This document shows, one piece after another, positions 34,086 through 35,619 of a stretch of DNA of 64,000 nt (positions are counted from its first letter, which is position 1; every line of letters starts with the position of its first letter). The translations under genes and the position numbers were made by a program. Source of the DNA: Octopus bimaculoides (lineage: Eukaryota); contig NC_068996.1 in NCBI RefSeq assembly GCF_001194135.2, forward strand, positions 27,790,289-27,854,288, in the 5' to 3' direction. The notes below the pieces were generated by a model. It was not told the DNA's origin. It saw only the letters and a list, made by a program, of their open reading frames with translations, and did not search any database.

Positions 34086-34506
34086 ATGTTCAGACATACT
34101 CTACAGAGAATTATCTTTCTTACCCTGTGGCATGTTAAAATCAACTTTTCTATAAACCATTGTGTGCTTTGTGTCTATACACATAAAGGAGGACTATATA
34201 TTCGTATTAAACTATTGTGTGGAAGGTTTAAAAATACATTATCAAGGATCTAAAATGTATTTATTGCAATAATAATTACATTATTTTCTTTTCTCTTTTA
34301 CTGTTGTTTAATGAAATATCTGAAAATGTTTTTGAATGCTTTTTTTTTGTTAAAATTGCTTTACATTTTATGCTTAACTGTTTGTCTTGAAAATAAAATG
34401 TAAAATCAAACAATATCTATTTCAATTTGATTAACCATTGCTTTATTAATATAATTACACATGTATCATTCTTTATTTTCTTTTTCTTTTTACCTGCTAT
34501 CTTCAG

Positions 34507-34524
34507 TGAGCGACAACTTTTTCG
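34507..34524 (+). CDS. MAPK8IP3/SPAG9: 18-nt symmetric microexon, VSDNFF
   Basis: Long polypyrimidine tract ctttattttctttttctttttacctgctatcttcAG, exon TGAGCGACAACTTTTTCG, donor GTAAGA. Splicing gives VSDNFF-GMGKE, matching the recalled vertebrate JIP3 [11 protein letters not shown]. Confidence 0.85.
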
Positions 34525-35619
34525 GTAAGATTACTGTCCTCAGCCCATCTCTCTTTAAGTTGTTGCTTTGCAGCATTCAAGCACTGTTGAAGAGGCTTTA
34601 AATATTGTCCTTTTTTAAATTTTTTTATTATTATTGTTAAATAGATCTCATGATATGGTTTATAATATAGCATTATATAATATCCATAAGGAAAGAAAAA
34701 AATTATGCAACAAGGCTTGACAAGGATTGTCTTTTGTGTTCTTCCATGTCTTGCTACATTTCCTTGGATGTCTGTGTTTTTTGTGCACGTGTGCACATGC
34801 GTGCACACGTTTGCTTGCTTTTGTATTTGTACTGTTTTCGTTTTGTTTTATGTCCTTGTAAATATCTGTACCATTTGTGTGTGAATTCTTGATGAATCAG
34901 TATTCTTTATTTGTACTGTTCTGTTGGTCATTGTCATTTTATGTTTGACATTCTCAGGATATTAAAACTGTTATGTTGTATATGAATCAACATATTTTGT
35001 AACTTCGATGTTCTTACATTAAAAAGTGTCAACATTATTTGTCAAGTGTTCAAATTGATTTCTTGTAACATAGCATGTTGTTGGCATTTTTATGTCTGAT
35101 TTGTTCAATGTTGTAAACTGCTTTCTGTCAGTCTTTGTTGTTGTGTATGTGTGGTCTTGTTGATGTTATTCTTCCAGTAAGTCCCAGTAACCTACTGGGT
35201 CTAGTCAATCAACTAGAATTCTTCTCTGCAAACACATGGTCCTGTTTCTGTAGAGTAAATCATTACTGCAATCATTTTACCTTGAGTATTAGGATTTAGC
35301 CCTGCAAGCTCAATGCATTTTTCACTGCAAATAGCATTGATTTTTGTACTTTCTCCTGATACATATTTAACTCAGACATTGTATTTTTAGTAGCATTTCT
35401 AATAGACACCCATCCAACGCATCAAGTAGGCAACTAAATAGCTGAGTTGCTAAAATGAGTGGTTGAAATCTTTTGAGCTAAATTAATTTACACATTTAAG
35501 ATTGTAAAATTTTCAATCCTGTACTTCACTATATAGTATATTTTGAAAATTTACACTAAATCACAGCATCAAAAAGTGGTTTTAAAAAACAATGTCATAT
35601 TGAAAATATAAAATATCTA

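Follow-up and report, generated by a model that had tools for sequence, protein, structure and literature searches.

The stretch of DNA considered here, hereafter the window, comprises 64,000 nucleotides (nt) of the forward strand of contig NC_068996.1 from Octopus bimaculoides (RefSeq assembly GCF_001194135.2, positions 27,790,289 to 27,854,288), and carries on its plus strand an orthologue of the JIP3/4 family (syd/Sunday driver/UNC-16). The element in question is an 18-nt microexon in a long intron of this gene, which encodes the hexapeptide VSDNFF and which, judged by the comparisons compiled below, is very probably a genuine coding exon with orthologues in other animal phyla. Through the JIP3 adaptor, axonal cargo is coupled to both kinesin-1 and dynein; variants of MAPK8IP3 are a cause of intellectual disability. 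The host gene was identified by tblastn and then by database proteins; the initial tblastn query was an approximate mixture of JIP3 and JIP4 that served exon location only, and the conclusions are drawn from the database sequences. The spliced host product matches Pfam JIP_LZII (1.6e-32) as well as the solved JIP3 and JIP4 chains 8pr2_B (2e-55), 2w83 and 6ejn, and the flanking peptides DVDFGADIT, GMGKELENLILENTELLATK and ASREHP...SSIWNF are nearest to Mytilus, Candidula, Lottia and Mercenaria. On the opposite strand of the window only low-complexity open reading frames (ORFs) over microsatellites were seen, and nothing coding. The exons of the host gene and the elements of the microexon are as follows.

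9570-9655, plus strand: upstream exon (...INNESIYNEFAMQDSDLIGDVDFGADIT), ending GAT ATA ACT G in phase 1, with donor GTAAGT at 9656 (tblastn and sequence)
34467-34504, plus strand: U-rich polypyrimidine tract, about 38 nt long, of which 5 are purines, with four UCUU units and spanning the UGC
34505-34506, plus strand: acceptor AG (cag) of the microexon, read from the sequence
34507-34524, plus strand: 18-nt microexon TGAGCGACAACTTTTTCG, phase 1-1, encoding V-S-D-N-F-F
34525-34530, plus strand: 5' splice site G/GTAAGA of the microexon, near consensus, read from the sequence
42463-42520, plus strand: first LZII exon, (G)MGKELENLILENTELLATK, with a phase-1 start, cag/GT ATG GGT AAA (tblastn and sequence)
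44339-44395, plus strand: second LZII exon (NALNVVKDDLIAKVDELT; tblastn)
45678-45825, plus strand: coiled-coil exon (SEHEIMREEINSLQ...AQADEE; tblastn)
46974-47164, plus strand: RH2 exon (...SSIWN; tblastn)

The microexon lies within the 32.8-kilobase (kb) intron between the GADIT exon (end 9655) and the LZII exon (start 42463), at a distance of 17.4 kb from the preceding cassette and of 7.9 kb to the LZII exon. Its codons read (G)TG AGC GAC AAC TTT TTC G, that is, VSDNFF followed by the first base of a glycine codon, and it is bounded by a canonical AG acceptor and GT donor. The sequence upstream is 87% pyrimidine over positions -40 to -3, with a TGC at 34495-34497 that starts 12 nt upstream of the exon. 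An earlier reading of the same DNA, made from its letters alone (the sequence-only reading), had described this succession of pyrimidine tract, TGC, exon and GTAAGA, and each element was found at its proposed position, the layout being correct to the base; its remark that the exon is invisible to the ORF track extends to all three coding mini-exons of this 33-kb intron, which are missed by ORF-based tracks. Inclusion of the microexon yields GADIT-VSDNFF-GMGKEL and skipping yields GADIT-G-MGKEL, the reading frame and the glycine before MGKE being preserved both ways.

The intron contains 100 AG-N18-GT sites, 77 of which are open in phase 1, and the microexon is the only one to encode [VIL].D[DNE][FY][FY], a motif that the window (64 kb, all six frames) contains only once; shuffling the intron 300 times never produced such a site. 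When a pyrimidine-rich acceptor, a GTRAG donor, phase 1-1 and a length of 9-63 nt are required together, the microexon is the sole candidate in the intron.

Orthologous exons in other animals

Nine loci were compared, namely the octopus locus and eight others, each of which bears a short phase 1-1 exon directly before the LZII exon. The counterparts are the following, with positions counted in the respective locus.

Snailfish (teleost) JIP3, 8992-9009: ccag/TTCGTGATGATTTCTTCG/gtaagg, encoding VRDDFF, 18 nt, the GMGKEV exon following after about 1 kb
Chilo suppressalis (moth): TTAACGATAACTACTTTG, encoding VNDNYF, 18 nt, phase 1-1
Diploptera punctata (cockroach): TTAATGACAACTTCTTTG, encoding VNDNFF, 18 nt, phase 1-1
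Arthropod-like Logan contig: TCAACGACAACTTTTTCG, encoding VNDNFF
Ixodes pacificus (tick): TTACTGACAACATTTTCG, encoding VTDNIF
Candidula unifasciata (land snail): TTGGGGATAATTTCTTCG, encoding VGDNFF
Patiria miniata (sea star): 24 nt, encoding VMSPDNFY
Carp JIP4: 15 nt, encoding DLNFF

The length of 18 nt, phase 1-1 and the regenerated glycine recur in fish, moth, cockroach, tick, snail and the Logan contig, while AG/GT boundaries, phase 1-1 and the donor G/GT[AG]AG are found in all nine loci. The junction that precedes the intron is of the same kind, ...GAD[IL][TL]-G/gt being seen likewise in moth, cockroach, fish, snail and sea star; in the snailfish the upstream exon ends GAG CTG CTA G/gtacga. 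Most nucleotide changes between loci are synonymous ones at third positions (GAC/GAT, AAC/AAT, TTT/TTC), as is expected of coding sequence. The sequence-only reading had drawn on a vertebrate JIP3 sequence with the insert VRDDFF, which agrees with the construct in PDB 8pr2 chain B. It had named as a refutation that this insert has no phase-1 exon of its own; in teleost JIP3 the insert proved to be a separate exon, of 18 nt and phase 1-1.

At the protein level, the survey drew on cluster look-ups after a profile search against 1.84 billion representatives. In Mytilus trossulus, XP_063415030.1 has the sequence GADIT-GREVNPGDYASS-DSENEDDQNERRST-VSDNFF-GMGKEL, its six residues being identical to those of the octopus exon, and the annotated protein of Candidula likewise contains the microexon peptide. 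Further counterparts in annotated proteins are VSDTFF in Priapulus, VNDTFI in the nematode Mesorhabditis, VTDNFY in Daphnia, and VSDNIF and VTDNFF in mites, and JIP3 of Drosophila sechellia reads ...PGEYASS-ANDNYF-GMGKEV. The position in the same intron, phase 1-1 and the peptide V-x-D-[DN]-[FY]-F in multiple phyla strongly support the orthology to VRDDFF that the sequence-only reading had proposed, and its further claim of conservation across bilaterians is well supported by counterparts in mollusc, ecdysozoan, echinoderm and vertebrate loci. On the other side it has to be weighed that the best matches of the spliced peptide in two word-indexed protein searches had 70-92% identity, and that no cephalopod appeared among the matches. 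On balance, we consider it very probable that 34507-34524 is a genuine orthologous coding exon. A full-text search of the literature found no paper mentioning VRDDFF, and a search for papers on JSAP1 isoforms gave nothing relevant.

Splicing signals around the microexon

Two further features close to the exon bear on its recognition.

34245-34505, plus strand: AG-exclusion zone, 260 nt without an AG dinucleotide, ending at the acceptor
34557-34568, plus strand: intronic AAGUUGUUGCUU, complementary to exon bases 34508-34519, predicted to form a 12-base-pair (bp) stem with two G-U pairs

The AG-free run of 260 nt, which the sequence-only reading had not noticed, is the longest in the window among those without an assembly gap (window mean 19.5 nt, 99th percentile 107 nt) and implies a distant branch point; in eight of the nine loci the AG-free zone reaches or exceeds the 95th percentile, the land snail Candidula being the sole locus without an AG-exclusion zone. 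In this snail, tandem acceptors aAG-cAG (NAGNAG) lie 3 nt apart at 31351-31360, the upstream one of which would add one codon. In the octopus intron, a 21-nt pyrimidine element, TTATTTTCTTTT(C)TCTTTTAC, occurs inside the AG-exclusion zone in two copies (34281-34301 and 34473-34493) that are 86% identical and 192 nt apart; both end in UUUUAC, which fits a branch-point consensus, and the repeat may be due to chance in U-rich sequence.

So short an exon is probably recognized by virtue of its near-consensus donor G/GUAAGA, the long U-rich tract, a distant branch point and an enhancer in the intron close before the acceptor, for which the UGC at -12 would be the obvious candidate; the layout would then be the one that SRRM3/4 (eMIC)-type factors use for neuronal microexons. 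The eMIC exons of fly and mammals have a long AG-exclusion zone, a UGC near the acceptor and a long pyrimidine tract (PMC8797185), and the canonical Srrm4 exon layout is described likewise (PMC12626420). Among the nine loci, a UGC within -21 to -4 is present in six (backgrounds 0.18-0.31, Poisson-binomial P = 0.006), and the fish exon displays the textbook CUU-repeat-UGC-AG layout.

Several observations weigh against such a reading. The -21 to -4 window was picked post hoc, after the data had been seen; a TGC stands 5-15 nt upstream at 15-17% of the AG sites in the octopus window, a UGC near an acceptor being expected by chance at 15-22%, and constitutive exons of the same gene also bear UGC near their acceptors (the exon at 9570 at -9/-5, the exon at 42463 at -5). 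No UGC lies within 60 nt of the acceptor in the orthologues of tick and sea star, and that of the cockroach has one only at -39. The octopus tract is U-rich with UCUU units, is devoid of a UCUC repeat and fits repression of the PTB type equally well, and the octopus donor is strong in comparison with the weak donors of fly eMIC exons (PMC8797185). Finally, only four eMIC exons were listed at shared positions in fly and mouse (spg, EndoB, unc-13 and unc-104), with syd unmentioned (PMC8797185). Of the neural-microexon signature claimed by the sequence-only reading, UGC and tract are present; as a signature they are only suggestive, UGC being common by chance and found at constitutive exons too; the same applies to its claim that the regulatory logic is intact in a mollusc, which the AG-free zone and the recurrence of UGC over nine loci support and for which the UGC alone is nondiscriminating. 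From this analysis, dependence of the microexon on eMIC and its UGC is put forward as a tentative and rather doubtful proposal.

An alternative exon under other control, be it PTB repression via the UCUU units, activation by ELAV or CELF, or a hairpin enclosing the donor, is a possibility to be taken seriously, albeit one that falls short of being favoured. The four UCUU units of the tract, the chance frequency of UGC near acceptors and the absence of syd from the shared fly and mouse eMIC exons (PMC8797185) all speak for it. So does the predicted 12-bp stem, in which the exon pairs with intron positions +33 to +44, the 5' splice site lying in the 37-nt loop between them (z = -2.47; 3 of 200 shuffles fold as well). 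Another cassette exon of unc-16 is, moreover, governed by UNC-75/CELF, EXC-7/ELAV and PRP-40 (PMC8378409). The combination of UGC, long AG-free zone and long tract is nevertheless the one described for eMIC exons and recurs in several orthologues, including fish; the stem has no counterpart of comparable stability in the other eight loci, which leaves the significance of the hairpin uncertain; and the only GCAUG within 400 nt sits 377 nt upstream of the exon, with no YCAY cluster found in a search for Rbfox and Nova motifs.

Some candidates and parallels considered in this context were set aside. The regulated exon of C. elegans unc-16 is not a counterpart of the octopus exon, being a different, 84-nt cassette (PMC8378409). 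A conserved RNA structure was rejected as well, the 311-nt region not being unusually stable (z = -1.1) and the local hairpin being significant in the octopus window only. A mapk8ip3 microexon has been deleted in zebrafish (PMC12626420); the data on it comprise inclusion values over development, by which it cannot be linked to the octopus exon. In carp JIP4, the 15-nt DLNFF exon is preceded by UGCAUGC, a GCAUG of the Rbfox type overlapping two UGCs.

Neighbouring cassettes and optional use

The microexon shares its intron with two further short cassettes, neither of which was flagged in the sequence-only note on this site. They are listed here together with the related short exon of the snailfish.

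10374-10409, plus strand: 36-nt phase 1-1 cassette acag/GTAGTGCAGTCAATCCTGGAGAATATGCTTCCTCAG/gtattt, encoding GSAVNPGEYASS, with AG at 10372-3 and donor GTATTT at 10410 (motif scan and orthologues)
17038-17070, plus strand: 33-nt phase 1-1 acidic cassette, encoding ESDKENDREST, with AG at 17036-7 and donor GTATGT at 17071 (scan for acidic phase-1 exons)
8302-8313 of the snailfish JIP3 locus: 12-nt exon GGGAGTTCTCAG, encoding GEFS

The peptide GSAVNPGEYASS has counterparts in GSWVHPGEYASS of arthropods, GNYVHPGEYASS of the tick, GREVNPGDYASS of Mytilus, VDPSEFS of the sea star and GEFS/DEFS of vertebrates, and the vertebrate 12-nt GEFS/DEFS microexon appears to have its long form in the 36-nt cassette. 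A 9-nt EFS exon was looked for in fish and not found, the actual unit being the 12-nt GEFS exon. The carp JIP4 locus holds a candidate 12-nt DEFS exon (4861-4872) and the 15-nt DLNFF exon (5206-5220), both of phase 1-1 and in the same intron. For ESDKENDREST the candidate homologues are DSENEDDQNERRST of Mytilus, DSDKEEE... of Candidula, DSGESD of Priapulus and DDSEESD... of the sea star, with a similar peptide in Daphnia; this candidate cassette is the weakest of the three, resting on composition and the ending ...R(E/R)ST. Taken together, the ancestral layout looks like three tandem phase-1 mini-exons in a disordered linker before LZII. Since all three cassettes are of phase 1-1 and multiples of three in length, any combination of them keeps the frame.

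That these exons are used optionally is apparent wherever several isoforms have been recorded. In the JIP4-like gene of the sea star, seven RefSeq isoform models include or skip each cassette independently, from GASIT-GMGKEV to the full set, and transcriptome assemblies of marine arthropods contain ...RSYDN-VNDNYF-GMGKEV alongside ...RSYDN-GMGKEV. A vertebrate protein carries GEFS-GMGKEV without VRDDFF, Pongo isoform 5 skips both cassettes, and the Lottia model skips all three. In view of these sequences it is likely that the octopus microexon is not only genuine and orthologous but also optional, and our analysis leans, with less assurance, towards an alternative use that is enriched in neural tissue.

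A microexon that is real and ancient, and constitutively or broadly included in the octopus without a neural switch, is considered unlikely. The near-consensus donor and the strong pyrimidine tract may need no enhancer, the models of Mytilus, Candidula, Priapulus and many arthropods just contain the exon, and the fly exon shows substantial inclusion in the ovary too. Against these points stand the optional use in sea star, vertebrates and marine arthropod transcriptomes and the skipping of all three cassettes in Lottia; furthermore, an 18-nt exon placed between introns of 17.4 and 7.9 kb, with 260 nt free of AG before it, is typical of regulated exons.

As regards the rest of the window, a remnant of a mariner-type transposase lies at 3584-3847 on the minus strand, in the intron before the GADIT exon (Pfam Transposase_1, 6.5e-07), and ORFs at about 60030-60620, also on the minus strand, look transposase-like by eye, without a Pfam match. 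Assembly gaps (runs of N) occupy 33453-33648, 39383-39598, 56661-56879, 59023-60025 and 61112-61404, two of them within the intron of the microexon. Microsatellites of the (CA)n, (TA)n and (ACGT)n types are plentiful, for instance at 34042-34099, a short way before the AG-free zone.

Age, protein effect and related systems

Already on record are the insert of vertebrate JIP3, the syd microexon of the fly and RefSeq models that contain the peptide (Mytilus and others); the less settled point is the age of the exon. A recent preprint accepts only APBB (6 nt) and MADD (9 nt) as bilaterian-ancestral neural microexons, and treats syd/SPAG9/MAPK8IP3 as a hotspot of convergent gains (type I convergence), the fly exon being conserved no further than hoverfly; its authors concede that their criteria risk false negatives (bioRxiv 10.64898/2026.09.05.749416). 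The sequences compiled here suggest instead that the exon probably dates back to the bilaterian ancestor. One ancestral exon, on which tissue specificity could have arisen repeatedly, is favoured by the intron, phase, length and peptide that Lophotrochozoa, Ecdysozoa and Deuterostomia have in common, and by the co-conservation, in order, of the ...PGEYASS exon.

Separate gains of the microexon in molluscs, arthropods and vertebrates, each time in the same intron, would be in keeping with the restriction of bilaterian ancestry to APBB and MADD (bioRxiv 10.64898/2026.09.05.749416), and are nonetheless regarded as highly improbable: convergence would have to recreate the intron, phase 1-1, the 18 nt and V-x-D-[DN]-[FY]-F in molluscs, insects, chelicerates, a priapulid, a nematode and vertebrates, it would leave the recognizable 24-nt sea-star and 15-nt fish JIP4 versions to be explained, and it would have to account for the adjacent 36-nt exon (...PGEYASS), which is conserved along with it in the same order. 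Least credible of all, and hardly worth entertaining, is a chance open frame between an AG and a GT, or a decaying pseudo-exon never spliced in, for although the intron offers 100 sites of the right spacing, the motif is confined to one of them, occurring once in six frames of 64 kb and in none of the 300 shuffles, the peptide is identical to that of an annotated Mytilus isoform, the splice sites at either end are intact, and the longest gap-free AG-free run of the window ends at the acceptor.

At the protein level, inclusion would add V-S-D-N-F-F, an acidic/amide pair followed by two aromatic residues, where a disordered linker passes into the LZII coiled coil. The Pfam JIP_LZII model starts at the last phenylalanine of the insert, and when an arthropod orthologue with both cassettes is modelled by AlphaFold2, the chain is disordered up to the insert and the LZII helix begins at its last two aromatics, with predicted local distance difference test values of about 50-67 that make the model indicative only. 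LZII is the segment that was crystallized with the TPR domain of the kinesin light chain (6ejn) and with ARF6 (2w83), and the microexon thus sits at the edge of a coiled coil that binds both partners. It can be rationalized that the insert remodels the N-terminal edge of LZII and thereby alters partner binding, most likely tuning the engagement of motor or GTPase. The same possibility of LZII partner binding has been proposed for the fly exon (bioRxiv 10.64898/2026.09.05.749416); no published measurement of how the six residues affect the partners of LZII was found.

The exon-level evidence argues that at least the exon itself is ancestral and suggests that the orthology of short exons is under-called. 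A more far-reaching view, which at present we would call speculative and not very likely, holds that the 18-nt exon, as a member of a three-exon ancestral module, is a third neural microexon of about 700 million years beside those of APBB and MADD, its logic of UGC, AG-exclusion zone and tract still being read by an eMIC-type factor in the mollusc brain; the syd/SPAG9/MAPK8IP3 hotspot would then largely be one module, made of exons too short for orthology pipelines to cluster. Were the exon indeed neural and dependent on UGC and eMIC in the octopus brain, it would represent a rare, directly testable splicing switch kept since the bilaterian ancestor.

Among known systems, the SRRM3/4 (eMIC) programme resembles the octopus case in an exon of at most 27 nt that preserves the frame, in a UGC near the acceptor, frequent by chance as this is, in the long tract and the long AG-exclusion zone, and in a neuronal host gene with roles in cytoskeleton and trafficking; it differs in that the octopus tract is U-rich and not a UC repeat. 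The exons of APBB1/2/3 (6 nt) and MADD (9 nt) are likewise tiny in-frame exons of adaptor or signalling proteins with counterparts in protostomes and deuterostomes; their neural inclusion has been measured in vertebrates, insects and outgroups, in contrast to the octopus exon, for which the correspondence is one of exon-level homology.

Another known system is the 18-nt neural microexon of Drosophila syd, which agrees in gene family, size and position directly beside LZII, and whose deletion leads to age-dependent hyperactivity and fewer offspring (bioRxiv 10.64898/2026.09.05.749416). The exon knocked out in that preprint is presumably the ANDNYF exon, and neural specificity and phenotype have been demonstrated in the fly, whereas the octopus exon is known from its sequence.

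A further one is the VRDDFF exon of MAPK8IP3 (JIP3/JSAP1), which is optional in vertebrates. It differs at residue 2, R in place of S, and at residue 4, D in place of N; the distance to LZII is 1 kb in fish as against 7.9 kb in octopus, and in fish JIP3 the preceding cassette has shrunk to the 12-nt GEFS exon and no acidic middle cassette was seen, while the paralogue JIP4 has diverged 12-nt (DEFS) and 15-nt (DLNFF) versions. In other respects the two exons correspond: both are of 18 nt and phase 1-1, both lie in the intron between the exon ending ...GADLL-G in vertebrates and the GMGKEV exon, both have a G/GTAAG donor and a tract followed by UGC (at -9 in fish and -12 in octopus) within a long AG-free zone, and four of the six residues (V..D..FF) are shared, the fifth being similar (N/D).

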